From the IMG/VR virus record IMGVR_UViG_3300017917_003822, positions 186,001 to 250,000 of that record: DNA of 64,000 nucleotides. One strand, 5' to 3'. This document shows positions 1,617 through 62,770 of this stretch, in pieces. Both the position numbers and the translations under genes were made by a program. Below the pieces are notes generated by a model. The model had not been told where the DNA came from, ran no database searches, and was given only the letters and a program-made list of their open reading frames with translations. Within the stretch, counting starts at the first letter, position 1. Every line of letters starts with the position of its first letter.

Positions 1617-1988
1617 ATGGAACACATTTTACCATACGAAGCAATCAACGAAGGTGCAGCAGCACTCCCAGCGATGCCTTCTTTTCTCAAATCAGCTGGA
1701 GCTAAACCTACATATGTTCAATACGGAGGTCCGAGAAAAACAAATCAACCACCAAATGCCTGGGAACTAAGGGTACCAGCACCATCCGGGGTTAGCAAGG
1801 AAGAATGGGTAATTACTTTCTTTCCGGACGGATCTTTTAACACAGGGGCAGGATCACAAAAGAATTTTTTAAGAAGTAGCGGTGAATGGAAAGCTGATGC
1901 ATCATCGGATTTTATTTTCGGAACTAAAGCTATCAAGGGGGTTTCTATGAAATTCAACTCGTATATGAGATTGACTCCACTAAATTAA
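1617..1988 (+). CDS. hypothetical, putative virion protein with CTS-like N-terminus
   Basis: MEHILPYEAINE; preceded by late motif. Confidence 0.7.
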   Translation: MEHILPYEAINEGAAALPAMPSFLKSAGAKPTYVQYGGPRKTNQPPNAWELRVPAPSGVSKEEWVITFFPDGSFNTGAGSQKNFLRSSGEWKADASSDFIFGTKAIKGVSMKFNSYMRLTPLN

Positions 1989-2007
1989 GAGGCTAATCAT
2001 AAGATCT

Positions 2008-2043
2008 AAAAGGCAGAGTAATAAATTACCCTGCCTTTTTTTA
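2008..2043 (+). terminator. intrinsic terminator
   Basis: AAAAGGCAG...CTGCCTTTTTTT hairpin plus T-tract. Confidence 0.7.
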
Positions 2044-2045
2044 TT

Positions 2046-2053
2046 GATATATA
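2046..2053 (+). promoter_or_regulatory. putative late promoter RATATATA
   Basis: GATATATA, 22 nt before GTG 2076. Confidence 0.55.
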
Positions 2054-2075
2054 CTAAGACAAAAAGATAAATTTA

Positions 2076-3212
2076 GTGAGCACATCTAGACCATTTGCAT
2101 ACAATCCAGGAACAGGGATAACAGGAACCATTCAGGTAGGGAACTTGGCAGTTGGGTATCCGACGGCTGGATTTGCTGCAACTGGATTGGAGTGGTGGAA
2201 TGGTCCGGATGAGGATCTTGGATACGTGATTGCACAGTCAGTTCCCGATGATAGCCAACCAACTCCTCTACCGGAGACAGCTTCAGTTGGATTCTTTAGG
2301 TCCGACGATCTATCGGACCCTTCATTCATTAGTCTATCTAACGTTATAGCTGGGCTTTCTGGTGCTGGTCCATTTCTCTCAGCATCAAGCGCAAAATCTT
2401 GGTTGAATTCAAATGGATACTGGACATCATATCCGGAGATAACGACAACTACAACAACCACTTTGCCGCCAACGACAACCACGAGCACCACAACGACAAC
2501 AAGTACAACCAGTACCACTACAATAGCTCCTGGTATAGTTACTGATAATTTATTCATGAAGCTTGATGCTAGCAATTACACATCAGGAACTTGGAACGAT
2601 GAGACAGGAAATGGTAATAATGCAACCATAAATGGGGCAACTTGGCAATCAACGGATGGCGGTATCTTTGATTTTGATGGATCCAATGACACCATAAGTA
2701 TACCGGACAACTCAAGTTTAAGATTAAGCACGACGACACAAAAAACGATCCAAGTGTGGGTTAAATTTGATGCTTTAGGTGGATTAAATCAACAAATCCC
2801 AGTATTCGGTAAATTATCATCCTCCTTTAATTTTGATGGTTATTGGGGAGGTCTTTTTTCAAATGCGGGTGCTATTAGATGTGTTACGAACGGAGCAGCA
2901 GTTCAGAAAATCAGCAACTCCATATTAACGGTTAACATAAACACCTGGTATCTCTTTACGTTTATATCTCAAATAACATTCGTCTCAAATACGACCAAGG
3001 TCTATATCAACGAAACTGAGTACATAACAGCTTCTCATGGAAATGACACTTATAACGAGTCTAATCCGCTCTATCTAGGTTGGATAGGATCCGGAGTAGG
3101 TTCACTATATCTAAATGGTAAAATTGGTGCATGTTATTTCTATACTAAGGGTCTTTCAACAGCGGAGATAAGCACTAACTTTAATGCAACAAAATCTAAA
3201 TACGGATTATAA
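2076..3212 (+). CDS. fibre/decoration-like protein: conserved N-domain, Thr-rich linker, LamG (ConA-like) domain
   Basis: LDASNY..W.D.TGNGN.AT...FDFDGSND LamG signature; poly-Thr linker; N-domain paralogous to 7262..8197. Confidence 0.75.
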   Translation: MSTSRPFAYNPGTGITGTIQVGNLAVGYPTAGFAATGLEWWNGPDEDLGYVIAQSVPDDSQPTPLPETASVGFFRSDDLSDPSFISLSNVIAGLSGAGPFLSASSAKSWLNSNGYWTSYPEITTTTTTTLPPTTTTSTTTTTSTTSTTTIAPGIVTDNLFMKLDASNYTSGTWNDETGNGNNATINGATWQSTDGGIFDFDGSNDTISIPDNSSLRLSTTTQKTIQVWVKFDALGGLNQQIPVFGKLSSSFNFDGYWGGLFSNAGAIRCVTNGAAVQKISNSILTVNINTWYLFTFISQITFVSNTTKVYINETEYITASHGNDTYNESNPLYLGWIGSGVGSLYLNGKIGACYFYTKGLSTAEISTNFNATKSKYGL

Positions 3213-3215
3213 GAA

Positions 3216-5130: not shown

Positions 5131-5147
5131 AAGGATTCATAAATCTG

Positions 5148-5155
5148 GATATATA
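5148..5155 (+). promoter_or_regulatory. putative late promoter RATATATA
   Basis: GATATATA, 4 nt before ATG. Confidence 0.6.
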
Positions 5156-5159
5156 AGTC

Positions 5160-6569
5160 ATGAGAAAAAACATACACGACTTTAGCTCTTTTGCTAAGAT
5201 TTATGAAGCTGGAAATGATATTAATCTTATCATCGGAGATTCGATCACACCAATCATTCTTAAAAATTCCAAGTCTCTTGATATTTTAGGAAATGCAGGT
5301 TCGGAAAGAACCCTTTGGAAACCCGGTATGGGTGTTAAGTGGTTGAAGGAAGCCGTTTCTAGATACCCAGTTACTCCAAATGTTAAAAATCTAGTAATCA
5401 ATATCGGAACCAATGGAGCTTTTAATCCAAAGGACGATATTAAAGGCCTAATTCAGGAGGTCAGAAGAGCATTTCCTTCGGCAAGATTATTCGTTGTTCA
5501 GGGATCTTGGGGATGGGGATATAATAAAAATGTAACTCCAGAAAAAGTTAAAACCTATTACGAGAGATTTAGAAATGAGGGGGTGAATGTGATAGATCCG
5601 CCAATCGGAAATGTCAAAGATCCACATACAGATCTTCCAATCTACCAAGAAATAGGGAATGCTATAGACAGAGCAATCTCATTGGGCTTACAGAGAGTTT
5701 CGCCGGAGGAAACCACTTCAGCAGATCAGTCTAAAACACAGGCTACTGGAACAATTATTAGCAGATCAGGGGATCCTTACAAATATAAGGTTGAAAATGA
5801 TCACTGGTTAGCAAAAAGAGAAGATCATTCCAGATGGTATGAAATAACAGGAAAGGATTTTAAACCAGCATACCAGGTTTCAATAGATATCCTGGACAGT
5901 GAAAACCCAAACCTTAGAACACTAGAAGCACCAAAGAGATCTAAAAAACCAGACACCGAGGGTGGTCCAGCAACCACTATTCTTCCTGTTGAGAAGGGAT
6001 CAGATCCGCAAAAGTTAGATCCGGAAGTATCTGAAAAATACAATTTTCATTTAATCCCAGATAACAAGGGAACAAATTACAGATCTGCACAATTTCCGCT
6101 CGAAATAATGAAACAGATGTATCCCAAGTACTCTATAAAGAATGTTATCAGACTTAACGGGGAAGGTAAAGATGGAAGACATCTTAAATCCGATCAATCA
6201 GTTTCTATTGCTGATGAAAGAAAGGTATGTCAGGAAATTGGATGTAACTTCTATGATCTATCAGCAAAAACGGATCAGGATCAGATTAATGAAATACTGT
6301 CGAAGGGTAACACTTTGATACATTGTGCTCATGGGGCAGATAGAACTGGTGGAAATGTTGCTTCGTATTTATATACAAAGAAACCAAATCCAAAATTAAC
6401 CACAACGGAGGAACTTTGGAAGTACACGACACAATATAATGACTGGAATTCATTAGCAATTAAAAAACCAAACACCTTCACTGAGGATGTTTATTTGGAG
6501 CAGGCTAAAAAATTCGGAGTTAGAGATCTGGAGCACGCTCAGGATCTAGCAAAAAAGTATAAACAATAA
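5160..6569 (+). CDS. SGNH/GDSL-like hydrolase fused to Cys-dependent (CX5R) phosphatase
   Basis: IIGDSI, NIGTNG, DPH in the N-half; HCAHGADRTG P-loop in the C-half. Confidence 0.65.
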   Translation: MRKNIHDFSSFAKIYEAGNDINLIIGDSITPIILKNSKSLDILGNAGSERTLWKPGMGVKWLKEAVSRYPVTPNVKNLVINIGTNGAFNPKDDIKGLIQEVRRAFPSARLFVVQGSWGWGYNKNVTPEKVKTYYERFRNEGVNVIDPPIGNVKDPHTDLPIYQEIGNAIDRAISLGLQRVSPEETTSADQSKTQATGTIISRSGDPYKYKVENDHWLAKREDHSRWYEITGKDFKPAYQVSIDILDSENPNLRTLEAPKRSKKPDTEGGPATTILPVEKGSDPQKLDPEVSEKYNFHLIPDNKGTNYRSAQFPLEIMKQMYPKYSIKNVIRLNGEGKDGRHLKSDQSVSIADERKVCQEIGCNFYDLSAKTDQDQINEILSKGNTLIHCAHGADRTGGNVASYLYTKKPNPKLTTTEELWKYTTQYNDWNSLAIKKPNTFTEDVYLEQAKKFGVRDLEHAQDLAKKYKQ

Positions 6570-6581: not shown

Positions 6582-6869
6582 ATGACAAAGAAAGTAGAAT
6601 TAATTGATTTTTATGCTGATTGGTGTGCGCCATGCAAAATGTTGTCGCCAACAATAGATTCATTGATGAATGAGTATAATGGAGATGAATCTGAGGTTGA
6701 CATCAAAAAATGCAATGTTGATCAGGATGCTGATTTAGCATCTAAATTTGGAGTTAGATCAATACCAACCCTAGTTTTTCTTAAAGATGGCGAGGAGGTA
6801 GGAAGATTGGTAGGGGTACAAAGTAAGGATGCGTTAACAAATAAGATTAACGAGTTGCTAAGCGCATAA
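6582..6869 (+). CDS. trxA: thioredoxin
   Basis: DFYADWCAPCK, VRSIPT. Confidence 0.92.
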   Translation: MTKKVELIDFYADWCAPCKMLSPTIDSLMNEYNGDESEVDIKKCNVDQDADLASKFGVRSIPTLVFLKDGEEVGRLVGVQSKDALTNKINELLSA

Positions 6870-8925: not shown

Positions 8926-9750
8926 TTATTTTAATAAAGAGTAGTACTCCTTAAAGTGTTTGATTCTATCAGCTAAACCAATGGTACCACCATTCACTCT
9001 CCTAGTTACCGAAGTAACAACAGCATCGGTTGCTCCCTGATCGCAGATAGACCAAAGTTTATTAGTATTAAAAAACCAAGCTGCTGAAGCTAGAGGGTAT
9101 TTAGTAGCAACTAAATCTGGATTTGCAAGAATGTCATCGTCAACAAATTTATCAAAAGCAGCGTAGTTTGATTTACCTGTTAGTTGGATATAACCTCTAC
9201 CTCTAAATTTGAAACCGTCTCTAGATGCTTCGTCACCATTACCCATTCTTCCACCATATACTCTGGCAGCGATTTTTTCTGGCTGTCTTGCATATGATTC
9301 ATTCAAATTTCCTGGGAAATATTTAGGGAAGATCTTTTTAAGACCGTCAGCTGAATAGTTCAAATTCTCCTGAACAGCTTTAAATCCACCCGATTCGTGA
9401 CCACATTGAGCTAAAAAGTGAGCTAATCTTAATGTGTTAGTGATGCCAAATTTAGCCGCGGTATCTGGAATTTGTGCGATAACAGAATCGGGAATGTGTC
9501 CCTTTAGTGCGCTCAATTTGAAAGCGGATGGTGGAACTGTAGCTGCCGGAGCTGCTGCAACAGGAGCTGTTCCGAATAATTTAGTCCAAGTTCCAGGTCC
9601 AACAATACCATCAGCAGTAAGACCGTTGGCTGCTTGCCACTCTTTCACTTTAGCCTCAGTACCTGGTCCGAAAGAACCATCTGCGACTAATCCTAATTTC
9701 TCCTGGAGTTTTTTAACGTCATCTCCCTTAGACCCATTTTTTAGTAACAT
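8926..9750 (-). CDS. endolysin: peptidoglycan-binding domain plus GH19 lysozyme/chitinase-like domain
   Basis: DG.FGPGT/DGIVGPGT PG-binding repeats; AHFLAQCGHES, ENLNYS, RGRGYIQLTG, VNGG..GL.DR. Confidence 0.9.
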   Translation of the reverse strand: MLLKNGSKGDDVKKLQEKLGLVADGSFGPGTEAKVKEWQAANGLTADGIVGPGTWTKLFGTAPVAAAPAATVPPSAFKLSALKGHIPDSVIAQIPDTAAKFGITNTLRLAHFLAQCGHESGGFKAVQENLNYSADGLKKIFPKYFPGNLNESYARQPEKIAARVYGGRMGNGDEASRDGFKFRGRGYIQLTGKSNYAAFDKFVDDDILANPDLVATKYPLASAAWFFNTNKLWSICDQGATDAVVTSVTRRVNGGTIGLADRIKHFKEYYSLLK

Positions 9751-9867: not shown

Positions 9868-10419
9868 ATGAAAATCACACTAACCCTACTTATCATCTTA
9901 TTGACATCTAAGAACCCGGAGCAGATTAATTTTACACCAAAAGAAACACCGGAAAAGATCAGTCATCTAGAAAAAAAATCAGAAAAAGAAGAGGAAATCG
10001 GACGTCTTAATTTACAGAATCTGTATAAAAAAATCGTAAAATCTGGAATAGAATTTCCTGATGTTGCTTTTGCACAAGCAGTTTTGGAATCAGGTTATTT
10101 TAAAAGTAAGATTTCACTTCATAATTCTAATCTTTTTGGAATGAGATTACCAAAAAGCAGACCAACAACAGCTAAAGGAGAAAAAAGAGGCTACTCAGTT
10201 TATGATTCATGGCACGGGAGTGTTGATGACTATAAACTATACCAGGAGAAGATTCTCAGAAAAAAAGAAATAACTAGGGATGAATATTTACAAAAGCTGA
10301 ACCGAAACTATGCATTTAGTCCACTCTATAGTAAAAAGATCTCATCCATTATCAAGAAACATCGAGACATCATAGGTGAGGTACCTGAGCATATGAAAGA
10401 CGGCAAGATAGAAAAATAA
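9868..10419 (+). CDS. GH73 glucosaminidase-like protein with N-terminal hydrophobic segment
   Basis: [23 protein letters not shown]...Y; likely start [10 protein letters not shown] downstream of the promoter. Confidence 0.75.
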
Positions 10420-12314: not shown

Positions 12315-13709
12315 TTATTTACCTGGGTAACCAGTTTCCCTGTGTACTCTTTCAAAAAGTTCTCTCTGTTTGGATTCATTGATGTATTTTGAAAGTTCTC
12401 TTACTCTATCAAAATCTCCAGCATCCAATGCTTGATCAATTAAAGCCATGATGTCTCTTTTAGCCATGTTAGCGTAATCTTCGTCATCTTGCTGCTGGTT
12501 TGCTGGTAATCCTAAATCAGGAGATTCTGTATCTATACCTGCTACGGAAAGTTCATAATCAGCAGTCTCTTTAGCGACCTCGTCAATTATTTTTTGCATA
12601 TCAGTCTTAGCCTTTGGATTTTGACTTAGTATATTAAACATAAGTTCCAAGAATTGTGGCGCAGGTAAAAGCATTAGCTTACCAAAAACATGCTCTCTTA
12701 AATTTTCAATCTTATCAACCTCATTAAATCCGTTAACAAAATCTCTTAAATCAGCTGCTATTTCTGGACCGTATCTAAGATCCTCGATCTCATCGGCCAA
12801 AGAATCTGTGTTTGAAATGATAATCTCTGCACTTTCCTCATCCTCAGGAATTGCGTTAGCAGCAATTAATTCATAGATTCCTTTTACGGTTTCATGAAGA
12901 AGCATAGCAAAATCAGTACCTAAAGCGTAAATTGTTGGTTTAGTTTGATCGAAAAGATCTTCGGTTTCTTCCTCCGGAAGTTCGTCAGTTCTCATTAATT
13001 CATCTAGAATATCTTGAGCTTTCTCCTCATTCTCCTTGTTGTTTTCTGGAGTCTCCCATTCAACCTTAACAGATCCAGCAAATCCTGACTTGTCTCTCTC
13101 CCACATCTCTTTTTGTACCTCCATTGGGATAGTCCAGTCGAAAAATCCTGCTATTTCAGTTATCTTATTTAAGATCTCTCTATACTCTCTTCCCTTATCA
13201 GCACCTAGTATTTCCTCCAATCCGTCAGTAACCTCAGGTAGATTCAGCATAAGTTTTGTATTTTTAGCTTCTCCTTGAGTGATGTTATTAGCTATTTTTC
13301 TCTTGTGGATCTCCGAGATGATTCCAGCATCTTTCAATTCTTTAAGCTGTGGCATTTCTGGCGGTTCAGCAGGAACATTTTCCATCGTTTTCTTGATCTC
13401 ATCGTTCTTAGGAAATCTTATCTTCAACTCAACCTCATCAAGAATTGTTCCGTACATAGCTCTAATAGCTCTTTCAGCTAGTGATTCAAGATCCTTCTCG
13501 TGACCTCTTTGAATCTCTCTGGCTTTGAATACAAGACTCATGAATTGAGGAATCTCTCTACCGTGTCTTCTCTGAAGCTCTCTGTTTTTTTCTTCAGCTT
13601 TTCTCTCAACGTCGGAAAGGTAACTTCCTTCTTTTCCTCCCTCTCCGGGAATAGCTGGATTGCCTTTTAACGAGGCCTCATCGATTTTTTGTTTAAATGA
13701 CTTAATCAT
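12315..13709 (-). CDS. acidic hypothetical protein, putative virion/head protein
   Basis: 464 aa; MIKSFKQKIDE N-terminus; UVR-like C-terminal helix pair. Confidence 0.7.
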   Translation of the reverse strand: MIKSFKQKIDEASLKGNPAIPGEGGKEGSYLSDVERKAEEKNRELQRRHGREIPQFMSLVFKAREIQRGHEKDLESLAERAIRAMYGTILDEVELKIRFPKNDEIKKTMENVPAEPPEMPQLKELKDAGIISEIHKRKIANNITQGEAKNTKLMLNLPEVTDGLEEILGADKGREYREILNKITEIAGFFDWTIPMEVQKEMWERDKSGFAGSVKVEWETPENNKENEEKAQDILDELMRTDELPEEETEDLFDQTKPTIYALGTDFAMLLHETVKGIYELIAANAIPEDEESAEIIISNTDSLADEIEDLRYGPEIAADLRDFVNGFNEVDKIENLREHVFGKLMLLPAPQFLELMFNILSQNPKAKTDMQKIIDEVAKETADYELSVAGIDTESPDLGLPANQQQDDEDYANMAKRDIMALIDQALDAGDFDRVRELSKYINESKQRELFERVHRETGYPGK

Positions 13710-13980
13710 CGTATCTTTCTTTTAATTTTCCAAGATTGAACTCCATTGGAGTTTTATTTTTTCTAAGCTCTTCCATGAATCTCTTCATAACATCCGCAAC
13801 TTTAGCTTTAGGAGCTGGTTCAACAGATGGTTTATCTCTCCTAATCGGACTAGGTCTGGAAGGAGTTTTTGATGGAGAAGTTCCGGGTTTTATTGTTGGA
13901 GCCGGTTGACCAGGCTTAGTAGCTGGTTGATTAGCCGTTTTTGTTGCTAAAAACTCATCAATTTTAGTAATAATCTTCAT
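13702..13980 (-). CDS. Pro-rich hypothetical protein
   Basis: 92 aa; PATKPG/PTIKPG repeats. Confidence 0.7.
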   Translation of the reverse strand: MKIITKIDEFLATKTANQPATKPGQPAPTIKPGTSPSKTPSRPSPIRRDKPSVEPAPKAKVADVMKRFMEELRKNKTPMEFNLGKLKERYDD

Positions 13981-14000: not shown

Positions 14001-14010
14001 AATATATATC
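14001..14010. promoter_or_regulatory. bidirectional putative late promoter
   Basis: AATATATATC reads RATATATA on both strands, 21-22 nt before two divergent ATGs. Confidence 0.6.
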
Positions 14011-14029: not shown

Positions 14030-15607
14030 ATGATGACCAATCAAAGTTTCCGTAGTTTTTTTGAAGCTGCACCGTTAATGGAAAATGTTCAGGCGGCAAA
14101 AGACTATTTATTAAAGCAATATGCAGAAAAAAAGAAGATAAAACCTTCTGAGTTAAGCGATGAGGAAAAGAAGGATATTCTTCTTAATCCAAAATTTATT
14201 GAGATCAGAGATCTAGTTGCTAAACAACCAGGATACACTTTACCCTTCCTGATATTCTACATTGAGCAAAAAGCCCATATGGAAGAGCTTGAAGAAATTC
14301 TGGATTACTTAAATAAATTTAAAACTCAGCTTTCCGAACTTAGCATGCCAGTTGCGGATTTTGCTAAGATCCAACCAACTAAGGATGATCCTAGACCTGG
14401 TTACGAACACCTTGGAGATGAGCTTAGAAATATCGAGAGAAGAAGAAAGCTTAAGGAGCTTTATAATGAGCTAACCCCAAGAATGAAAAAACAGTTCAAT
14501 AAAGCATCTAATGAACAAATAGAGGATTTAACAGCTATTTCGAACCAACTTAAATCACTTCCAGATATCGTTAGTAAGGATGATCTTGATGCGGAGGGTA
14601 AACCTAAGGTTCTTAACGCTTGGAAATCTTTTTCCAGAAATATGAAAAAGTACGACGACACAAGAACTTATCCTGAATATGCGGATGAAAAGGTTGCTTT
14701 TGGTGACATAGCAAAGGATGCCCTAGATTTCATAGAGGGTTGGGGACAAGATGAGGACGCACTTCTTAAAAAACTTAAAGAACTAGGACCTCAAGTTGGG
14801 ATCCTGTACGCTAAAAAAGGTTATATTGCGATGTCTGCAAGAACACCGGAGGCCCAAAGGGCAGTGTGTGCGGATACTAACTGGTGTATTAGAACAGATT
14901 CTACCTTCTGGAGCTATGGAGGCGGAAGAATCCAAATAAACATCATCAACAAAAATCTTCCGGTTACAGATAATCTAAGTCTTATTGGTATCACAATCAA
15001 TCCGAATGGAACTATTCACACAGATGCAACCAGACCAAACAACAGGCTTAGAGATCAGAATGGGAGCACATTCAAAACATACATCGATGCACTTCGTGGG
15101 CTTGGTTATCCAGCAGATCTAATTAAGGATGTTGAAGATAAATTCCAAAGAGAAGTAGATATTAAGTTAGCTCTGGAACATTACTATAAAGATGGATCCA
15201 ATCTATCACCAAGAAAAGTCGTAGAATCTCTAATTACGATGAGCAAGGGATTCCTATCAGGGGTAATGCCTCAGGAAGACTGGGAAAGAATATCCGGTAT
15301 CGTATCTCAAATTATCTTTGAAGATAAGGGTCTTACTAAAGGGGCGTTTATGAAGATATTTAAAGAAAATGGTATTTACGTTGAAGCAACATGGAACGTA
15401 TTCGACTCGTTAATCGGTAAGGATTACACAAAAGAGGAGATGAAGGAGATTGGAGACTCAACTAAATCTGGATTGGAAGCAATGGCAGAATTACTTGAGA
15501 TTGAGGACAGCGGGGCATTAGGGATGAGAAAATCTGATGTCGATGCAATGAAGGAGGTAGTTTCTAATAAGAAATGGGTTCTTGAGCAGATCTCAAAAAG
15601 AATGTAA
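14030..15607 (+). CDS. hypothetical protein with TxWC motif
   Basis: 525 aa; DTNWCI. Confidence 0.75.
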   Translation: MMTNQSFRSFFEAAPLMENVQAAKDYLLKQYAEKKKIKPSELSDEEKKDILLNPKFIEIRDLVAKQPGYTLPFLIFYIEQKAHMEELEEILDYLNKFKTQLSELSMPVADFAKIQPTKDDPRPGYEHLGDELRNIERRRKLKELYNELTPRMKKQFNKASNEQIEDLTAISNQLKSLPDIVSKDDLDAEGKPKVLNAWKSFSRNMKKYDDTRTYPEYADEKVAFGDIAKDALDFIEGWGQDEDALLKKLKELGPQVGILYAKKGYIAMSARTPEAQRAVCADTNWCIRTDSTFWSYGGGRIQINIINKNLPVTDNLSLIGITINPNGTIHTDATRPNNRLRDQNGSTFKTYIDALRGLGYPADLIKDVEDKFQREVDIKLALEHYYKDGSNLSPRKVVESLITMSKGFLSGVMPQEDWERISGIVSQIIFEDKGLTKGAFMKIFKENGIYVEATWNVFDSLIGKDYTKEEMKEIGDSTKSGLEAMAELLEIEDSGALGMRKSDVDAMKEVVSNKKWVLEQISKRM

Positions 15608-15614
15608 ATATATA
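15607..15614 (+). promoter_or_regulatory. putative late promoter RATATATA
   Basis: AATATATA, 4 nt before ATG. Confidence 0.55.
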
Positions 15615-15618
15615 CAAT

Positions 15619-16899
15619 ATGGAAAAAGTATTAAGCTATAAAGCTTTCGAATCGGAAGAAATAGAAAACGATTTAAACCCTGAGACAAATCAGGAAGTAG
15701 ATGAAGCCAGAAGCTGGTATTCTTTAAATGATAGAACCAGAGAAATTGCGGAGGCTCTAGATAACACTCAGGAGGGAAGAGATCTTCAAGCAATCGGAGT
15801 AAGAATCTACGAGAGAAGATATGACGAAATCGTAGTTGAAAGAATTTCTGGCCCTATGGCTAAGGTGGCTTTATTTAAAAATGAAGATGGCGAATATTGC
15901 TACGAATACCTTTCAAGTAAGGCTGGTGTTGAAAGATATAATCTTTCTAAATTCGACACACCAGAAAAATGTTTAAGAGCACTTCTTCTAAGAATCATCA
16001 GAAACAATATCCCTGCTGCAATTATTCCTAAAAAAGATATACCAAATCTGAACTTCAATGAACTAGTCCCTGTTGGTGCTAAATTGGATATGCCACAAAT
16101 TCTTGCTAGAATGAAGGAGGTTATCGGAGGTCATGAATTATCGGATCTTGATGTAACTGCAGTAGTTGCTCTACCAACAATTCAGAATCTTGATGATTTA
16201 GGTATGGTTGGTAAGGGATCAAAAAATGACAGAACGATCATCAATAAAGTCGATCAGATCTCACCAAAATACAGATTCTATTCTAGAGCAACCAAAAGGG
16301 TTGGTGAAATCTATGGGGGCTTATTAGCAACCATCGTTGGTGTTAATGAAAGAGACCTGGGAGGAACCATGTTTAGCGATCCTTATGAGGTTTGGAGAGT
16401 GAACAACTCAAACAGAATGCCACTTAATAGTGTTAACTTTAGAACTGGAGACAATTCTGTTAAATGTAACATTCAGGATAACGAGATCTTCGGATCTGTT
16501 TTTATCGCTATATTCAAGAGAACCTTCAAGAGAGCCAAGGGTAGATATGAGAAAGAACATTTGATCGAGCCTACGTACTCAATCAGAAGCGATAGAGACA
16601 ATAAAGTTGAGATTATCAGAGAGTTAAATAGCCTACTTAGTGATTACTTTACTCAGGCCGCTGATACTCTTGAAGCAAGCGTTTTCATCGATCCGGGTGA
16701 GGAGAACACAGCAATCCACACAAACGCTAAAGCTCTAATGGTTAAATTTCTATTGAGAAATGGATCAACTCTACTAAAGGGAATAATCGGAGAGAACGAC
16801 GAGCTACAAGAACTTGTTGATATCACAACTAGAGAGGAAGATGTTGATGCATTAACTAAGAGATTAATTAAAGTATCTAGAGCTCTTAGATACGTATAA
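15619..16899 (+). CDS. hypothetical protein, CTS-like N-terminus
   Basis: 426 aa; MEKVLSYKAFESE. Confidence 0.75.
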   Translation: MEKVLSYKAFESEEIENDLNPETNQEVDEARSWYSLNDRTREIAEALDNTQEGRDLQAIGVRIYERRYDEIVVERISGPMAKVALFKNEDGEYCYEYLSSKAGVERYNLSKFDTPEKCLRALLLRIIRNNIPAAIIPKKDIPNLNFNELVPVGAKLDMPQILARMKEVIGGHELSDLDVTAVVALPTIQNLDDLGMVGKGSKNDRTIINKVDQISPKYRFYSRATKRVGEIYGGLLATIVGVNERDLGGTMFSDPYEVWRVNNSNRMPLNSVNFRTGDNSVKCNIQDNEIFGSVFIAIFKRTFKRAKGRYEKEHLIEPTYSIRSDRDNKVEIIRELNSLLSDYFTQAADTLEASVFIDPGEENTAIHTNAKALMVKFLLRNGSTLLKGIIGENDELQELVDITTREEDVDALTKRLIKVSRALRYV

Positions 16900-33443: not shown

Positions 33444-33451
33444 GATATATA
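33444..33451 (+). promoter_or_regulatory. putative late promoter RATATATA
   Basis: GATATATA, 4 nt before ATG. Confidence 0.6.
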
Positions 33452-33455
33452 GTTC

Positions 33456-39565: not shown

Positions 39566-39568
39566 TGG

Positions 39569-40213
39569 ATGAAAAACATTAAACTATTCGAAGATTTTAG
39601 TAACATACCGGATTTCAATGATATTATTGATCAGGTCGTAAAATTCCTTGAGAAGGATAAGAAGGACCTGATTTCAGTTAACAAGATGCATATAATCATA
39701 AAAAAAGCTTTTGATTCGGTCACGTTGGCCGAATTATTTAGCTTTCTGAATAATCTGGGATATAAAATGACAATATATCCCGACATTTCACCCTCCTCAA
39801 TGAATTCGAGATTTACTGTAAGTAAAATAAACTACAAGGATCCCATAGGTGATCTAAAATACGGTCTTAGTTTATTAATAGATTCAAAGTTAGGAGAAAA
39901 GCAGACTAAAACCTGCATTAACATATTGGGAAACAACATTGGAATAACCAGTCTGGGTAATTTCATGCAGGATATTTTAATCAAAAAAATCAACGACAAT
40001 GAAATTGATTTGCTTTTCTGGAACGGGAAATATTTAGTTACAGGCGAATTTGAACAGACGTCCATCCACCGGGAGGATGATATGGTTGCATTAGACTTTG
40101 AAAGCTACGAGACTTCAGATAAAAGAGACTATATTCTTTCCGCTACTGCATCAGGATCTTGGGCGGCAGGATATGATATTGAACAAATCGAATATATAGA
40201 TTTTTTAAATTAA
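39569..40213 (+). CDS. hypothetical protein, CTS-like N-terminus
   Basis: MKNIKLFEDF. Confidence 0.7.
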   Translation: MKNIKLFEDFSNIPDFNDIIDQVVKFLEKDKKDLISVNKMHIIIKKAFDSVTLAELFSFLNNLGYKMTIYPDISPSSMNSRFTVSKINYKDPIGDLKYGLSLLIDSKLGEKQTKTCINILGNNIGITSLGNFMQDILIKKINDNEIDLLFWNGKYLVTGEFEQTSIHREDDMVALDFESYETSDKRDYILSATASGSWAAGYDIEQIEYIDFLN

Positions 40214-40680
40214 TTCCCTATAGACATCCTTCTGTGTATTTGTTTTTTTGCATGATTTATCAGGTAGTCTCCAACTCCAGGAACTTTAAGAAGGTATGCT
40301 AATTCGGCTCTGTAACACACCAATTCTTCCTCATTTTCCGACATTTTTTGGTTACTCATCCTAATCATTAGGTGAAAGGATTCATGTACTAAAACCGCAC
40401 ATATGTTGTCTATATCATCATACTGAATGTCTCTTCGGGAGATGATGATAGTTCCTTTGGTGTCTATACCCCCGCCACTGTTGGTTGAAAAAGAACCATT
40501 CCAAAAGGAAATATTATTGCACGAGTTAACTATAATGTCATAGTAGGCAGGATCAACGGATTTAATTTTATCCAAAGCCATCTGTGCCTTAACTTCCCAA
40601 AAATCACCAGCACGGTCTATTTTAATTTGGGCAGTTGAAAAAATGGGAAGGATAAATATTATCAATAGGTTTTTTAGCAT
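40210..40680 (-). CDS. putative secreted zincin-like metallopeptidase
   Basis: Signal peptide; VHESFH...EE (HExxH). Confidence 0.55.
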   Translation of the reverse strand: MLKNLLIIFILPIFSTAQIKIDRAGDFWEVKAQMALDKIKSVDPAYYDIIVNSCNNISFWNGSFSTNSGGGIDTKGTIIISRRDIQYDDIDNICAVLVHESFHLMIRMSNQKMSENEEELVCYRAELAYLLKVPGVGDYLINHAKKQIHRRMSIGN

Positions 40681-40707: not shown

Positions 40708-41151
40708 ATGATGACTAGATCAAAAACAAAAAAGCAACCGGAAAAAAGAAGTGACGAGATTACCGATCTGGAGGTTGCTAGAAAAATGTTAAAAATATAC
40801 CAGAGCGCACAGGACAGAAAGCTTGACTTTGATCTTGGCTTTGAGTCGGTTAAAAAATTATTGTCATACCCAACTTGTTACTATACTGGAAGAAGATTTG
40901 AAGAGGAAGGTTCGTTTTCCAGAAGTTTCGATAGAGTTGATTCATCCAAGGGATACGTCGAGGGAAATGTTGTTGCATGCACTGTTGACATTAACGGGAA
41001 AAAGAGCAATTTATCGGTGGAGGAAATAGAATGTCTGTACATTAAATTGGTTAAGCCTCAATCGTTTAAAATGGAGGAGTCCAAAAAAATAGAAATGGAG
41101 GTAAATTTCCAGGAAATAAATAATCTGGAGGGGAACCAGGAGGATATATAA
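40708..41151 (+). CDS. T4 Srd-like / degenerate HNH-fold protein
   Basis: SAQDR..DFDL....K.LL....CYYTG..F......SFDRVD...GYVEGNVV. Confidence 0.55.
   Translation: MMTRSKTKKQPEKRSDEITDLEVARKMLKIYQSAQDRKLDFDLGFESVKKLLSYPTCYYTGRRFEEEGSFSRSFDRVDSSKGYVEGNVVACTVDINGKKSNLSVEEIECLYIKLVKPQSFKMEESKKIEMEVNFQEINNLEGNQEDI
41143..41150 (+). promoter_or_regulatory. putative late promoter RATATATA
   Basis: GATATATA, 4 nt before ATG. Confidence 0.6.
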
Positions 41152-41154
41152 TGA

Positions 41155-41958
41155 ATGGAGATAAAAAATTTTAATACCTGGATAACTGAATCTGAAGACC
41201 CGGATAATGGTATAGTAAACAAGGACCACATAGATAAATTAATCAACGATGTGGATTTTTTAAAAAGAGTACCCAAGGGAGATCTACGTTTTGAGGTTCT
41301 TAAAAACGGTCAGCAACCACCATTAAAGTTTTATCTAATTAGGATAATGACGCATGGAAGCCTCTATAGACAAATAAACAGGCTGCTGGATGAAACCGGA
41401 TTTGATGTTGTACCCGATATGGTTGGTAATTATATTACAATTACAATTTTAATTGATGATAGCCTTCCCGGAGGCGATTTTAAAATCAAACAGCTATATG
41501 ACTGGAGTGAAAGACATAATATGACTGTTTTATCAAACCCGAAGAACTATGATCAATTAAAAAACGTTGTAGAGAAATCAATTGAACATATTTTCGAGAA
41601 AATAAAACAGGTTAGATTGATTGTCCCATCAAACATAAGAAAGATTGAAGGATTCTCGGATAAGATTAAGGAGAGCGTAAAGTCCCTTTACGATGGTATA
41701 ATTGATAATTTTATTGAGAATGGAAGTATACCAAACGAACTAATTGATGATGATATTCTGACTGAAATTTTCACTAAAACTCTTCATGAAAATCCACAGT
41801 ACATTGAGAAAATAAACAATCTACCTCCATCTGCTAAGAAGAGGATTTTTAAAAGCTCGTTGGATCTTTTCAAGGACGATAATATTGAAATAAATCAAAA
41901 AACTCTGAACGGCATAGTGGCGTTCTTCAAAGTTAAAAAAACATGGGGGATGATATGA
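41155..41958 (+). CDS. hypothetical protein, CTS-like N-terminus
   Basis: MEIKNFNTWITES. Confidence 0.7.
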   Translation: MEIKNFNTWITESEDPDNGIVNKDHIDKLINDVDFLKRVPKGDLRFEVLKNGQQPPLKFYLIRIMTHGSLYRQINRLLDETGFDVVPDMVGNYITITILIDDSLPGGDFKIKQLYDWSERHNMTVLSNPKNYDQLKNVVEKSIEHIFEKIKQVRLIVPSNIRKIEGFSDKIKESVKSLYDGIIDNFIENGSIPNELIDDDILTEIFTKTLHENPQYIEKINNLPPSAKKRIFKSSLDLFKDDNIEINQKTLNGIVAFFKVKKTWGMI

Positions 41959-42353
41959 CAAAAAATCTAAAAACCTTTGAAAGCTGGAATAGTAAGGACG
42001 ACGAAATAGAGAATCTTCAGGAGTTGCTTAATTATAACATGGATTATATTAGAGAACTCTTCGATGAGAGAACCATGGAATCGGATTTCTTGGAAATTTC
42101 GGAACCGGAAGAATTTGTGGTTGAATATTGGCCTAAATCTTTGGATGGAGCCATTCCAAAGAGAATCTCATATTATATAGACGAGATCGCGGAGAAAATA
42201 TCGGAGCGAATGAAAAATAAAATCGATTGGAGATTCTCACCTAACGGCAACGTGCAGAGAATAATTTTCGAACTCGATAGTCCTGTAAATACGGAACATT
42301 TGGAACTCGTCAGAAAATTTAATAAAACAAAAGAAAAACTAAGATACACATAA
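41955..42353 (+). CDS. hypothetical protein, CTS-like N-terminus
   Basis: MTKNLKTFESW; ATGA overlap. Confidence 0.7.
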   Translation: MTKNLKTFESWNSKDDEIENLQELLNYNMDYIRELFDERTMESDFLEISEPEEFVVEYWPKSLDGAIPKRISYYIDEIAEKISERMKNKIDWRFSPNGNVQRIIFELDSPVNTEHLELVRKFNKTKEKLRYT

Positions 42354-58271: not shown

Positions 58272-58283
58272 ATTGTTTTTTTA

Positions 58284-58553
58284 TTATGAGTAGGGTTTAT
58301 CCATCGTTGGGTAACCTGTTCTGTCCATACATTTTTTAAGATACCCCATGGCCTCATTAATATATCCCTCATATGTGTGTGCCTCCTCCATATCATCGTG
58401 ATAATCTTTAGCTTCCTTTGTCAGATACTCCTCACAAAGTTTTTCCATCTGCATTTTAGCAGATTCACTCATACAAGAACTTCCCTCCTGCATTCCGTAA
58501 TTTTCCTGAATTTCGGAAATCCCGTAATTTTCATAAGATTGTAAATTTTTCAT
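58284..58553 (-). CDS. acidic hypothetical protein, CTS-like N-terminus
   Basis: MKNLQSYENY. Confidence 0.7.
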   Translation of the reverse strand: MKNLQSYENYGISEIQENYGMQEGSSCMSESAKMQMEKLCEEYLTKEAKDYHDDMEEAHTYEGYINEAMGYLKKCMDRTGYPTMDKPYS

Positions 58554-58571
58554 AGTATTTTATTTAATTTT

Positions 58572-58820
58572 TTATTGTTCGTCTCCAGTTTTTTTGGAAT
58601 TTTTAGCTGAAAATATTTTTTCGATTACAGTTAAACCTAAACCACCACCTGCTATTAAAACAAGGGCATCAAACATAAACTCCGGAGTAACGAAATCCTT
58701 AGAATTTATTGTTGCAACCCAGGTTAAGATTATCACATTAAATAATGCAAAAAGTGCGGCGAACCTCTTGCTAGAAGTATCACTTTGCCCCGAAAGTAGG
58801 TCGTTAAAAAACTTTTTCAT
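58572..58820 (-). CDS. 2-TM small membrane protein, holin candidate
   Basis: SSKR followed by two TM segments; late motif upstream. Confidence 0.5.
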   Translation of the reverse strand: MKKFFNDLLSGQSDTSSKRFAALFALFNVIILTWVATINSKDFVTPEFMFDALVLIAGGGLGLTVIEKIFSAKNSKKTGDEQ

Positions 58821-58842
58821 GTCTATTTTGGTTATTTTAATC

Positions 58843-58871
58843 TATATATCTGAAAATGACTTAAATATATA
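58843..58871. promoter_or_regulatory. divergent pair of putative late promoters
   Basis: GATATATA minus (58843-50, 22 nt to ATG) and AATATATA plus (58864-71, 4 nt to ATG). Confidence 0.6.
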
Positions 58872-58875
58872 GTAC

Positions 58876-59313
58876 ATGAAGAATCTACTTGAATATAATC
58901 ACTGGAACAATAACAGCATAAAATGGAACCAAGGAGGCTGGTTGTTGATTAAAGGTAAACCTAATAAAGAGGGTAAATCTCACATTTTCGCAGCACAGGT
59001 TAGAAACGTGAGCCAGCTTGCTAGATATAAGACTAGTGGCAAGGAAGGTATACCCGTTAATATGGCGAATCTATATCCAGATTTTTATGGGATTGTTACC
59101 GATAGTTCGGGTGAAATAAAGGCTATGAAACTTATTTCAGATACAGCTTATATAGATAAGTGGATTGGTTTAAAAAATCTTAGTGTTGGTCTAAATAAAA
59201 ACAAGACTCTAAATTGGAGAGAAACCATTGCAGAAACATCACTGAGCAAGGTACTAAAATCAAATGAAGGTTTACTAAAAAATTCAGATGAATTTATAAT
59301 ACCTCAGAAATAA
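58876..59313 (+). CDS. hypothetical protein, CTS-like N-terminus
   Basis: MKNLLEYNHW. Confidence 0.7.
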   Translation: MKNLLEYNHWNNNSIKWNQGGWLLIKGKPNKEGKSHIFAAQVRNVSQLARYKTSGKEGIPVNMANLYPDFYGIVTDSSGEIKAMKLISDTAYIDKWIGLKNLSVGLNKNKTLNWRETIAETSLSKVLKSNEGLLKNSDEFIIPQK

Positions 59314-59345
59314 ACCGGCAGTTTATATTTTAAATATAAAATAAA

Positions 59346-59921: not shown

Positions 59922-59973
59922 TATTTTCTATTTTAATTTTATATCAAAGGTGTTTAAAATAATTTCACATTTA

Positions 59974-60005
59974 TTTTTTATTACCGTGAATCTTTTTTAC
60001 ATTTG
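59974..60005 (+). promoter_or_regulatory. T-tract/CG-N11/TAnnTTTG promoter
   Basis: CG 59985-86, TACATTTG 59998-60005. Confidence 0.7.
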
Positions 60006-60040
60006 TCATCTATAAAAACAAAAAACAAAATTATTAAAAA

Positions 60041-60598
60041 ATGGAAACATCAAAAATTATTAAGTACTCAATTATTGCATTAGTTGCATTTTTATTCATT
60101 GGGATATTCTCCAGTGTGATCTCAGTTTCTAACCAGGAGGTTGATTTAAGAAACAGATTCAAACAAAAGATGGATCAGAGAACTGCATTTTACGACAAAA
60201 TGTGGAAGACTATTTCTCAGAAATCTCAAGTTGCGATCAAGAATGATAGCTCATTCGCAAAGAATGTTAATGTCATCATGGAGGGAAGAAAGGATGCACC
60301 TCAAGTCTTTATGAAGTGGGTCCAAGAAAGTAATCCGAACGCAAATTATGAATCAGTTGCAGCTTTATATGGAGACCTTAGCAGAGCTATCGAGGGACAA
60401 AGAAACGATTTCTTCATGGAGGAAAAAATGATCCAGGGAATAGTTTTAGAGCACGATAATATAATGTCAAAATTCCCATCTGGATTTATCCTATCAACAT
60501 TTATGGGCAGAACAAAACTTGTCTATAAGCCTATCACATCGGACAGAACCGACGAGGTCATTAAAACCGGCAAGGATAACGACGTGGACGTATTCTAA
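60041..60598 (+). CDS. membrane-anchored helical protein (LemA-like topology)
   Basis: N-terminal TM; W..ESNP, IE..R..F, FP. Confidence 0.6.
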   Translation: METSKIIKYSIIALVAFLFIGIFSSVISVSNQEVDLRNRFKQKMDQRTAFYDKMWKTISQKSQVAIKNDSSFAKNVNVIMEGRKDAPQVFMKWVQESNPNANYESVAALYGDLSRAIEGQRNDFFMEEKMIQGIVLEHDNIMSKFPSGFILSTFMGRTKLVYKPITSDRTDEVIKTGKDNDVDVF

Positions 60599-60662
60599 TA
60601 TTCAATAAAAAACTAAAGCCAGTCTTAGGACTGGCTTCTTATAATTTTTAAATCGTATCAAT

Positions 60663-61871
60663 ATGTCAATCTGGTTTTGTTTACTTATACCCGTAGTGGG
60701 TGCTTTAGTTATGCTAAAGTGGTTCAGAAAAAATCTTGCCTGGTGGGAGGTTATTGTTCCCGCTGTTGTTTGTTTTTTATTCATACTAATCTTTAAACTG
60801 ACGGTTGAAAGAATCCAGGTTAATGATACTGAATATCACGGAGCAATCATAACGGAGGCAAGATATTATGAGTATTGGGAAACTTATGTTCATAAAACAT
60901 GCACAAGGACAGTTAGCTGTGGTAAGAATTGCACGACCACGGTTAGCTACGATTGTTCATATTGTGACGAGACACCGAAACGTTGGACCGTTGTTAATTC
61001 ATTGGGTGAGGAATTTAGAGTATCGGAAGAATATTATAAATATCTGACTAAAAAATGGAAAGCAACACCAAAATTTGTTGAACTTAATAGAGATATTGAT
61101 TATACTGGTGGTTGTGGACAGGACGGAGATATGTACGTCATTAAATGGAATGTTGATCCGATGACTGCTGAATCAACCACAACTGATCACTGGTACGAAA
61201 ATAGAATACAGGCAGCACACACCGCATTCGATTTCGTTGATGTTACTGAAGAAGATGTCAAAAAATACTCTCTCTACGATTATCCCGACGTAAATGGATT
61301 CCACCAGGAAACTGTTCTTGGAATGGATAAAGCCAAATGGATCACCAAGATCCAAACTAACCGAATGAAACAATGGGGTAAATTTCTAAATGGTCATCTG
61401 GGAGTAAAGAAACATGCCCGCATCTATTTTCTTTTCTTTGTTGATAAATCAATGTTAGCTGCAAATATGCAGGAGGCTTATTGGGACGGAGGAAATGATA
61501 ACGAGCTAGTTGTTTGCATTGGACTTAGCAGTAAATCCAAGGAGATTCAATGGGTTAAACCTTTCTCATGGTCACCAACGGGAAGAATAGTTCCTGATGT
61601 TCGTGAGGGTATAATGAAAAATCCAGATTTTAATGTTGATCAAATAGCAAAAACCGTTTGGAGTACTGTCGATAAAGAATATGTTAGAAGAGACTTCGAG
61701 GAATTTTCATATGTAACGGTTGAACCTCCTACATGGGCTATTTGGGTAACATTCTTTATAACTTTGGCAATAACAATTGGAATTTGTTATTGGGCAGTTG
61801 TTAATGATATAGATGGGGGCAACGATCCGATATTCGGAAAAACAAATCGCTATGGAGGATATAGATATTAA
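60663..61871 (+). CDS. membrane protein with Cys-rich periplasmic domain
   Basis: 2 N-terminal and 1 C-terminal TM; CTRTVSCGKNC...YDCSYC; GGNDNELVVCIG. Confidence 0.7.
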   Translation: MSIWFCLLIPVVGALVMLKWFRKNLAWWEVIVPAVVCFLFILIFKLTVERIQVNDTEYHGAIITEARYYEYWETYVHKTCTRTVSCGKNCTTTVSYDCSYCDETPKRWTVVNSLGEEFRVSEEYYKYLTKKWKATPKFVELNRDIDYTGGCGQDGDMYVIKWNVDPMTAESTTTDHWYENRIQAAHTAFDFVDVTEEDVKKYSLYDYPDVNGFHQETVLGMDKAKWITKIQTNRMKQWGKFLNGHLGVKKHARIYFLFFVDKSMLAANMQEAYWDGGNDNELVVCIGLSSKSKEIQWVKPFSWSPTGRIVPDVREGIMKNPDFNVDQIAKTVWSTVDKEYVRRDFEEFSYVTVEPPTWAIWVTFFITLAITIGICYWAVVNDIDGGNDPIFGKTNRYGGYRY

Positions 61872-62193
61872 AAAAACGGTGTCTTTTAAAAATAGACACG
61901 GAAAGGAGATCCTAATTTCAAGAACTGGACTAAATGAATTTAGAATGAGAGGGATTGACACCTTCTTTATGAGAACTTCAACAACCGATGATGGAAAACT
62001 TATTATGTTTGATCCTTCAGGTGGTCCTTATATGACAGCAGAGCACAATGATAGTCCAGGAATAGATATGGGATTTTTTGATATCGAGTGGGAAGGACTT
62101 AGAGTTGAATCTATGACCTGGGGTGAAATTAGTGGAGAAGTTATTCTAAAGTGCTATTCAGAAAAACCAGTAGATTGGGTTGAAGTTAAATAA
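61852..62193 (+). CDS. hypothetical protein (DPSGGP)
   Basis: NRHG...FDPSGGPY. Confidence 0.7.
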   Translation: MEDIDIKKTVSFKNRHGKEILISRTGLNEFRMRGIDTFFMRTSTTDDGKLIMFDPSGGPYMTAEHNDSPGIDMGFFDIEWEGLRVESMTWGEISGEVILKCYSEKPVDWVEVK

Positions 62194-62770
62194 AAGCTCT
62201 CTTCTTAATCTCCAGATACTTATTTATATTCTTTTCGAACTCTTCCTTGGTCTGGTTTATTTTTCCGAGGAAGATTTCTCTTTCCCTTTCTGTTAATCTA
62301 TTGTAAACCTTGATAAAGGAACCCGGATCTGATTTATAGACGTCAACAATCACATTTCCAAAGTTGGCATCTTGTCCCGTTGTTGCGTAGTCTATCGCTC
62401 TGCCCTTTCTGCTTTTATATCTCTTTCTTGCCCATTCCAGAACGTAGAAAAATCTAAGATTCCAATCATCAAGAGTTCTTATCTCGGTAAATCTCTTAAG
62501 AATATGAACATGGAATGAATTTTGATATCCCGGGGTCGATTTTCTTATCGGCCCATTTCCATAAATTGTGATGCAATTACCGGGCCTATCCATATCAAGT
62601 TCATCATTATAAAGTCTCATATTTCCATTATCCCAGATCCTGTCGGTTGTGGAATCATAAAACCCAACAGATTCTAAAACTGAAAAAATAGGCAGGGCCT
62701 TTACCTCATCCAGGGTATAGTTATAACCATTAGATTCGAAAAGAGCAAAGGACTTTAAATTGATCATCAT
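62186..62770 (-). CDS. hypothetical protein, CTS-like N-terminus
   Basis: MINLKSFALFES; AATATATA at 62794-62801 minus. Confidence 0.7.
   Translation of the reverse strand: MMINLKSFALFESNGYNYTLDEVKALPIFSVLESVGFYDSTTDRIWDNGNMRLYNDELDMDRPGNCITIYGNGPIRKSTPGYQNSFHVHILKRFTEIRTLDDWNLRFFYVLEWARKRYKSRKGRAIDYATTGQDANFGNVIVDVYKSDPGSFIKVYNRLTEREREIFLGKINQTKEEFEKNINKYLEIKKRAFI

Follow-up and report, generated by a model that had tools for sequence, protein, structure and literature searches.

A putative capsid-targeting and processing tag on otherwise unrelated late proteins of an uncultivated huge phage

When late proteins of a phage have little in common except their first dozen residues, what is the shared peptide for: does it carry its bearers into the head, is it only a protease site, does it send them elsewhere, or is it a relic of common descent or a by-product of some signal in the nucleic acid? 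This question is raised by a window of 64,000 nucleotides, bases 186001-250000 of the 270,629-bp IMG/VR virus record IMGVR_UViG_3300017917_003822 (completeness rating 99%), in which an earlier reading of the DNA, hereafter the original prediction, had pointed to 12 dispersed proteins with a common N-terminus resembling the capsid-targeting sequence (CTS) of phage T4. Here we argue that this N-terminal tag is likely to be a T4-type capsid-targeting and processing propeptide that has been expanded to about 9% of the genes in a clade of uncultivated huge phages. Binding of the tagged proteins to the prohead core, their cleavage, packaging and injection are what we infer from the sequence. Coordinates are those of the window unless they are called genome positions.

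The consensus of the tag is M-K-N-I-K-S-F-E-D-F-L-N-E. Its conserved columns are two aromatic residues three apart, then L/I-x-E, plus an aliphatic residue ahead of them, and the tag is acidic in character. A position-specific scoring matrix (PSSM) of 14 columns, built from 30 clear members and scored by leave-one-out, reaches at least 8 bits at 25 of 360 annotated N-termini, as against 0.28% of 1070 internal methionine positions; by this measure the tag belongs to the starts of open reading frames (ORFs) and not to internal methionines. Among the 2167 ATG-initiated ORFs of a six-frame scan of the whole genome, 33 reach at least 10 bits and are counted as tagged; the scan also fixed three start codons, one of them at 41955. 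When the 33 tags were aligned into an 18-position hidden Markov model (HMM), 31 of them were recovered from the raw genome at E values of up to 0.2, along with a single false hit. The same pattern emerges from a test that presupposes no pattern: the genes directly behind the promoter motif RATATATA are enriched in aliphatic residues at position 4, aromatics at positions 7 and 10 and acids at positions 8 and 12. In the late genes (n = 55), the aromatic pair is spaced by three residues in 24 cases, whereas spacings of 1, 2 and 4-6 occur in only 2-6 cases each. Beyond residue 25, only one of the 528 pairs of tagged proteins shows similarity, that pair being two proteins with a soluble lytic transglycosylase (SLT) domain.

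The tag is followed by a candidate processing site. The motif [ILV]-N-E occurs at residues 8-45 of 17 of the 33 tagged proteins, as compared to 18 of the 327 others (p = 4e-11). If the cut is placed at the first x-x-Glu past the second aromatic, so that the P1 residue is Glu by construction, it falls at a median of residue 14 (range 11-36), with predicted preferences for L/I/V at P3 (24 of 32), N at P2 and S or G at P1'. In T4, the ten-residue CTS of IPIII depends for targeting mainly on Tyr4 and Phe7 and for processing on Ile8 and Glu10, and the cleavage motif of the protease gp21 is L/I-x-E (PMC9026906). Aligned on the aromatics, these four residues coincide with tag columns 0, +3, +4 and +6, which are among the most conserved ones. 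With an Asp at P1, T4 precursors are still targeted but no longer processed.

The second line of evidence is the association of the tag with one class of promoters. The putative late promoter motif, (G)GATATATA(R), alternates between A and T in 57 aligned sites, which have no conserved column between -30 and -2 and no -35 region. RATATATA is found within 45 nt upstream of 56 genes genome-wide; the spacing has its mode at exactly 4 nt, and other genes cluster at 15-31 nt. The 4-nt spacing is shared by 11 late genes, including those at the window sites 5148-5160, 15607-15619, 33444-33456, 39557-39569, 41143-41155 and 58864-58876, with six further sites outside the window, and the mRNAs of this class may be leaderless or nearly so. 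In an RNA-labelled metagenome run, one contig starts at precisely 39569, a hint only; contig ends are unreliable as start sites. By count alone, RATATATA is in marginal excess in the window (19 versus 10.5 expected); it is the placement that is non-random. The motif also heads the genes for the tail sheath, the protease and a neck/head-closure protein as well as further structural genes. A homologue of the late sigma factor gp55, at genome 29487-29846, matches T4 gp55 with E = 4.8e-6 and passes the Sigma70_r2 cut-off.

According to the original prediction, nearly all genes with the shared N-terminus lie directly behind RATATATA or in its operons, and the pattern that it gave is indeed found in 21 of the 56 genes with RATATATA within 45 nt upstream, but in 12 of the 304 others (p = 2.6e-11). 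The profile scan for co-occurrence that it proposed, run genome-wide with operons walked from their promoters, showed that all 33 tagged ORFs belong to RATATATA units, 24 of them directly behind the motif and nine one to three genes downstream, versus 117 of 327 untagged ones (Fisher p = 2.9e-14). An equal frequency of the tag in the other promoter class, TAnnTTTG, had been named as fatal to the idea; in the same genome-wide walk, none of the 33 tagged ORFs falls into that class.

Does the genome encode a machinery that could read such a tag? A 649-residue protein at genome 46011-47960 has as its N-terminal third a Peptidase_S77 (T4 gp21) domain (Pfam 30.5 bits, cut-off 27; phrog_207 head maturation protease, E = 4e-37), with His78 and Ser133/134 invariant in 20 orthologues. 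The following gene encodes a Gp23-family capsid protein (E = 4e-42), and near 178.5 kb the genome has another, shorter gene of this family. The N-terminus of the capsid protein, invariant in 43 relatives, contains I-I-E↓S and S-L-N-E↓S-A-G (arrows mark predicted cuts), the latter at the end of the propeptide, in an arrangement like that of P-L-L-E↓G and L-T-E↓A in T4 gp23. The description of the N-termini as capsid-targeting-like is thus borne out: the anatomy of the T4 CTS is present, as are genes for a protease of the gp21 family that matches it and for a gp55-like late sigma factor. Three coiled-coil-like proteins are encoded downstream of the capsid gene. Those of 380 and 296 residues, which are scaffold-like, carry the tag (18.6 and 7.2 bits), and the one of 85 residues has a short tag-like N-terminus. 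Further tagged genes follow at genome 56767 and 59071. Since scaffold-like proteins of the head module are tagged, the tag seems to mark incorporation into the prohead core in general, and not only injected effectors. An 828-residue protein of the same module had no match in the phage collection, and T4 gp22 as a query found no homologue in this genome.

The C-terminal half of the protease offers a clue as to how the tag might work. It contains a tandem array of 13 repeats, each 14 residues long, with the unit Y-S-E-Y-L-A-E-N-L-D-K-x-I-x (genome 46893-47438, residues ~295-476). Every repeat ends in an L-x-E cleavage-type site, and the array is kept in 20 orthologues. Of the 73,431 internal positions of the proteome that were scored with the eight-column core of the tag matrix, the top 100 include 11 of the 13 repeat units; conversely, a matrix made only from the repeats of the 20 orthologues scores the tags of this phage above its other N-termini (p = 7e-4). 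An AlphaFold2 (AF2) model of this protease-scaffold protein, with a mean pLDDT of 45, shows the repeats as long continuous helices at low confidence. We read the tag, the scaffold repeat and the T4 CTS, after the fact, as variants of one motif, which would be either the extended recognition site of the protease or a scaffold-packing helix. Because the core of the tag recurs 13 times in the repeat domain, the probable mode of action is that the tag imitates a single scaffold repeat or has the extended protease-recognition motif in common with it.

The following sequence of events can be envisaged. The short promoter of the GATATATA type would be used, probably through the gp55-like sigma factor, to read the late genes, some 33 of whose products begin with a tag of 11-20 residues. 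In the tag, the aliphatic residue and the two aromatics three apart would make up the hydrophobic side of a short helix, directly followed by the [L/I/V]-[N/x]-Glu site, and the aromatic face would bring the protein into the prohead scaffolding core. Once the shell has assembled, the gp21/S77 protease would cut after Glu, so that the mature protein is freed inside the head and the tag leaves. At least some of the cargo, which would range from scaffold-like proteins to enzymes, would then be ejected with the DNA.

Could the motif instead be nothing but an extended recognition site of the prohead protease, or of another late protease, that keeps late enzymes as inactive pro-forms, with no carriage into the head? 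After all, the tag is best conserved in its C-terminal part, which is a cleavage-type motif, and the core is also found in the protease repeats and in the capsid propeptide. But the N-terminal half, with its aliphatic residue and first aromatic, is conserved as well as the cleavage part; the equivalent residues of T4 serve targeting and not processing (PMC9026906); and S77 proteases work inside proheads, so that their substrates must reach the prohead anyway. This explanation appears rather unlikely.

One may also envisage that the tag sends proteins elsewhere than to the head interior: to the tail or baseplate, to the membrane, to a chaperone or into a degradation system. Amphipathic N-terminal helices have many targeting roles, and the SLT cargo could act equally well from the tail tip. 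What speaks against such destinations is that sheath, neck and signal-peptide proteins under the shared promoter are untagged, that scaffold-like proteins encoded beside the capsid and protease genes are tagged, and that the tag is acidic and not membrane-like. We regard another destination as quite unlikely.

A further possibility is that the shared feature resides in the RNA or DNA of late genes, either as a downstream box that serves leaderless mRNAs or as a recombination cassette, and merely translates into similar peptides. Such a feature would be in line with the 11 late genes at exactly 4-nt spacing, whose mRNAs may be leaderless, and with the A-rich character of the second codons, which are rich in Lys and Asn. 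However, the codons behave otherwise: where two tags have the same residue, the codon is identical with a frequency of 0.506, as against 0.489 expected, and the codons chosen for conserved Phe, Glu and Asn match those of the genome as a whole. Since the synonymous codons at conserved tag residues are neutral, only the peptide is conserved, and there is no shared DNA cassette. Besides, tagged genes occur at both 4-nt and 15-31-nt spacings and inside operons, and the spacing of the aromatics and the Glu are features of a protein. An origin at the level of nucleic acid is therefore highly improbable. The claim that promoter and tag form a portable module needs to be divided accordingly: as a unit of DNA the module is not supported, given the two spacing classes, the nine tagged genes without a promoter of their own and the neutral codons, but portability at the level of the protein is. 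Finally, it is hardly credible that the tagged proteins are diverged paralogues of one family, with the N-terminus as the last recognisable remnant. Local clusters do exist, such as the 12 tagged genes within genome 262-270 kb and, in a related genome, a tandem array of ten copies. Past residue 25, however, just one of the 528 pairs shows similarity; the Pfam domains of the tagged proteins (SLT, ADK, RimK) are unrelated, and their cellular homologues do without the extension; and in the relative LR756500.1 the tag sits on 17 families without a homologue here. Thus paralogy, a DNA cassette and an mRNA-level signal were all rejected, on the grounds of pair similarity beyond residue 25 and of the codon test.

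With a capsid-targeting propeptide as the favoured reading, we can turn to the individual genes. Ten of the 33 tagged ORFs lie in the window, beginning at 1617, 5160, 15619, 33456, 39569, 41155, 41955, 58553(-), 58876 and 62767(-). The 12 N-termini of the original prediction are all located at ORF starts and ten of them pass, while those of ORFs 12315-13709(-) and 14030-15607 turned out to be weak. The first tagged ORF (1617-1988, +; 123 aa; PSSM 16.4 bits; HMM E = 0.14; predicted cut after Glu12, I-N-E↓G) has its ATG 21 nt past the late-promoter motif GATATATA at 1588-1595(+), and no known domain, Pfam and PHROG being without match. At five loci of the plus strand the motif lies 4 nt ahead of the ATG of a tagged gene: the motif at 5148-5155, whose spacing is kept at 12 orthologous loci, precedes an esterase-phosphatase ORF of 469 aa (5160-6569; 17.9 bits; predicted cut after Glu16); that at 15607-15614 an ORF of 426 aa (15619-16899; 17.2 bits; E = 0.003; predicted cut after Glu11); that at 33444-33451 the SLT ORF of 245 aa (33456-34193; 19.2 bits; predicted cut after Glu21, L-N-E↓G); that at 39557-39564 an ORF of 214 aa (39569-40213; 25.9 bits), which is the second-best HMM match genome-wide (E = 2.7e-5); and that at 41143-41150 an ORF of 267 aa (41155-41958; 19.0 bits; predicted cut after Glu12, I-T-E↓S), which has a tagged orthologue in the relative G001 (IMGVR_UViG_3300024239_000013). 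The second gene of the last operon is tagged as well (41955-42353, +; 132 aa; 13.7 bits; E = 0.005), its true start being the internal ATG at 41955 and not 41943.

Near the right end of the window, a minus-strand promoter at 58843-58850 drives an untagged ORF (58572-58820) and behind it a tagged one (58284-58553; 89 aa; 16.6 bits), and its divergent partner at 58864-58871(+) lies 4 nt before a tagged ORF of 145 aa (58876-59313, +; 21.9 bits). The last tagged ORF (62186-62767, -; 193 aa; 14.9 bits; predicted cut after Glu11, L-F-E↓S) uses the second Met as its start and has its promoter at 62794-62801(-). Apart from the SLT and esterase-phosphatase proteins, the eight tagged ORFs of the window have no recognisable domain in Pfam or PHROGs, and a phmmer search of four large window proteins against the PDB found nothing.

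Some late genes are tag-like but were not counted as tagged. A two-ORF late operon at 12315-13980(-), with its promoter at 14003-14010(-), encodes proteins of 92 aa (13702-13980; 2.8 bits) and 464 aa (12315-13709; 4.2 bits) with weak tag-like N-termini and an x-x-E↓A site. Next to it, a late ORF of 525 aa (14030-15607, +) is weakly tag-like (F-F-E↓A) but below the PSSM listing threshold, and was unmatched by the tag HMM, Pfam, PHROG and PDB. In two places, 14001-14010 and 58843-58871, divergent late promoters stand back to back, and tagged or tag-like operons are read from them in either direction; in the first place the motifs of the two strands overlap within a single palindromic stretch of A and T.

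Other late genes of the window are untagged. An ORF for a thioredoxin-like protein (W-C-x-P-C; 6582-6869, +) lies directly behind the esterase-phosphatase gene in a shared late unit. Two paralogous genes behind GATATATA, at 2076-3212(+) and 7262-~8190(-), with apparent GTG and TTG starts, share the N-terminal R-x-F-A-Y-N-x-G-T-G-I-T-G-T and may encode fibre-like structural proteins. The ORF 8926-9750(-) combines PG_binding_1 and GH19 domains and is endolysin-like, 9868-10419(+) encodes a glucosaminidase with a hydrophobic N-terminus, and 40210-40680(-) a signal-peptide protein. In the late class, tag and signal-type N-termini are mutually exclusive.

What would the tag carry? Most tagged proteins have no match in Pfam and PHROGs, and the recognisable ones are diverse, as had been predicted with the SLT enzyme and the esterase-phosphatase as examples, both of which were found. 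The SLT protein has a C-terminal lytic transglycosylase domain (Pfam SLT, E = 3.7e-10), and a second tagged SLT protein is encoded at genome 265560. In the esterase-phosphatase the tag is followed by an SGNH/GDSL esterase domain and a dual-specificity-phosphatase-like domain; Foldseek matches its AF2 model to SGNH hydrolases and TpbA-type phosphatases, with Pfam Y_phosphatase3 as a weak match under the curated cut-off. Outside the window, a complete adenylate kinase at genome 138700 is tagged, its Pfam domain beginning at residue 27, straight after the tag; genome 150676 encodes a tagged RimK-like ATP-grasp enzyme, and genome 264424 a tagged protein with a weak PRTase-like match (22.2 bits, below the cut-off of 26.3). 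Twelve tagged genes are packed into 8 kb at genome 262348-270386, at the right end of the record, a cluster which recalls the variable internal-protein loci of T-even phages and which, in a circularly permuted genome, would adjoin the structural module. An anti-defence role of the cargo, also suggested in the original prediction, is not supported. The left end of the record is probably cut within a gene, as genome 1-120 lies inside a Gly/Ser-rich repeat-coding stretch.

The relatives of the phage show which parts of a tagged gene are kept. Judged by its proteins, the phage has its nearest named relatives in the huge phages LR756500-LR756504 and LR745206 and in the Lak phages of Prevotella, and farther ones in the phages PTm1 of Tenacibaculum, MaF61 of Flavobacterium and PAU of Sphingomonas. 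In the DNA, megablast of 6 kb of the window gave zero matches to GenBank phages, and so no close nucleotide relative there. The capsid protein has at least 185 relatives in IMG/VR, the best 80 of which, those that were kept, are 71-90% identical, and near-identical DNA is present in runs of 16 studies, from pond, lake, wastewater, soil, salt-marsh and marine samples. The host is probably a member of the Bacteroidota, as judged from the promoters and the absence of Shine-Dalgarno sites from the genes; the leaders are A-rich, and TAnnTTTG precedes many genes. Twelve orthologues of the esterase-phosphatase (48-75% identity) keep the tag, the promoter 4 bases before the ATG, and an invariant Phe8 and Glu16, and the stretch from this Glu to the catalytic G-D-S varies in length and sequence (variable linker, 17-24). 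The adenylate kinase orthologues also retain the tag.

Searched with the tag HMM at E up to 0.1, five complete relatives of 250-434 kb gave 13-30 tag matches each, and the 462-kb LR756500.1, whose capsid protein is 46% identical, gave 25; Lak-A1 had a single match, which contains a stop, and PTm1 and T4 had none. In the head regions of PTm1, LR756500.1 and Lak-A1 there are no tagged ORFs near the capsid gene, the tagged genes of LR756500.1 being located elsewhere. Cargo turnover is visible at two distances. In G001, 18 of 31 tagged proteins are orthologous to tagged proteins here, three have no homologue, and ten form a tandem array of paralogues (231-315 aa) with near-identical tags, the sole homologue of which in this genome (267830-268819) is untagged. 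The 25 tagged proteins of LR756500.1 are all without a homologue here; a tag that is stable while its cargo is replaced supports portability at the protein level.

Several observations weigh against a T4-type targeting propeptide. The phage is uncultivated and known here from its genes alone. The tag HMM has no match in T4, PTm1 or Lak-A1, and the T4 CTS scores only 3-6 bits, so that the likeness to T4 would be one of shared grammar, with homology undemonstrated. The AF2 models give low confidence to the tag helix and to the scaffold repeats, and a predicted complex of the full protease-scaffold protein with residues 1-40 of the tagged SLT protein had a score of 0.00 in a run without controls, which is evidence neither way. 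The tagged ORF at 58876 is the only one that lacks an x-x-E site within ~45 residues past the tag core. Besides, we know of no precedent for an adenylate kinase or an ATP-grasp ligase as head cargo.

A bolder proposal, which we put forward only tentatively and which may well prove wrong, would extend targeting to the whole clade of 250-460-kb uncultivated phages. Here, one grammar, aromatic-x-acidic-aromatic-L/I-x-Glu, would be common to the T4 CTS and the protease-scaffold repeat; the tag would mimic the scaffold repeat, so that any protein bearing it co-assembles into the prohead core; and each phage would package and inject two to three dozen proteins, including enzymes of nucleotide metabolism and protein modification, with the cargo swapped wholesale between lineages. 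If this is the case, these phages would have the largest and most plastic arsenal of injected proteins known in phage, and a transferable natural packaging tag would exist outside Enterobacteria. Some consequences follow already if the tag works as in the favoured reading. Sequence alone would then suffice to read which proteins of uncultivated huge phages are injected or lie in the inner head, as the 18-position HMM gives 13-31 candidates per genome with about one false, and unexpected cargo would be pointed out, such as the adenylate kinase, the RimK-like ligase and the esterase-phosphatase. A second natural tag for packaging proteins would be at hand when phages that infect Bacteroidota-type hosts are engineered. 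The four genetically mapped residues of the T4 CTS would represent an old, general grammar of gp21-type head assembly, tied to the scaffold repeat.

How does the tag compare with known systems? Its closest counterpart is the CTS of T4, which is carried by IPI, IPII, IPIII and the Alt propeptide and removed by gp21. In both cases, a peptide of 10-20 residues stands at the N-terminus of otherwise unrelated late proteins, late here by promoter class, and has aromatics three residues apart followed by L/I-x-Glu, and both genomes encode a gp21-family protease, a gp23-family capsid protein whose propeptide has the matching cleavage motif, and a gp55-type sigma factor. The late promoter, too, is in both a single short -10-like element with no -35 region, in a genome that encodes a gp55-type sigma factor, but its consensus is TATAAATA in T4 and GATATATA here. 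The differences are that the tag described here is three residues longer at its start, with an extra conserved aliphatic residue, and favours Asn at P2, where T4 has Ala; that T4 has a handful of carriers, as against about 33 (9% of genes) here, including metabolic-type enzymes and scaffold-like proteins; and that the host is probably one of the Bacteroidota, the tag being known from genes only. Among 1441 T4 ORFs, the tag matrix ranks IPIII 8th and IPII 21st, at 3-6 bits and only after a post hoc register shift of three residues, while the repeat-only matrix ranks IPIII 2nd, IPII 3rd and the gp21 inhibitor Inh 5th, at low scores (4.4 bits for IPIII and IPII). [quoted passage not shown]

The huge phages of Al-Shayeb et al. 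2020 (LR756500-LR756504, LR745206) and the Lak phages have related head genes, with 35-54% identity over the matched parts of the protease and 29-46% in the capsid protein. LR756500.1 shares the tag in 25 copies, and Lak-A1, by the tag HMM, is without it. A literature search, which did not cover every journal, found no paper that describes the tag, in huge and Lak phages included. As to the cargo, gp16 of T7 is an internal core or ejection protein with a transglycosylase domain and is thought to leave the head with the DNA; an SLT domain on a head-internal protein provides a rationale for the two tagged SLT proteins. The core proteins of T7, unlike the proteins considered here, are not known to carry a cleavable targeting tag, and T7 is not known to have a prohead protease.

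In the phiKZ-like giants (phiKZ, 201phi2-1, SPN3US), a gp21-like protease cuts the propeptides of head and ejection proteins after Glu (PMC5694885, PMC9026906). These phages resemble the one described here in their giant size, in a gp21-family protease with a long C-terminal extension, and in the cleavage, predicted in our case, of many inner-head proteins after Glu. Their propeptides, however, are mostly longer than 100 residues, with the motif S/A/G-x-E, and, one pair of paralogues aside, they have no common N-terminal tag, in contrast to the short and uniform tag that recurs genome-wide in the phage considered here.

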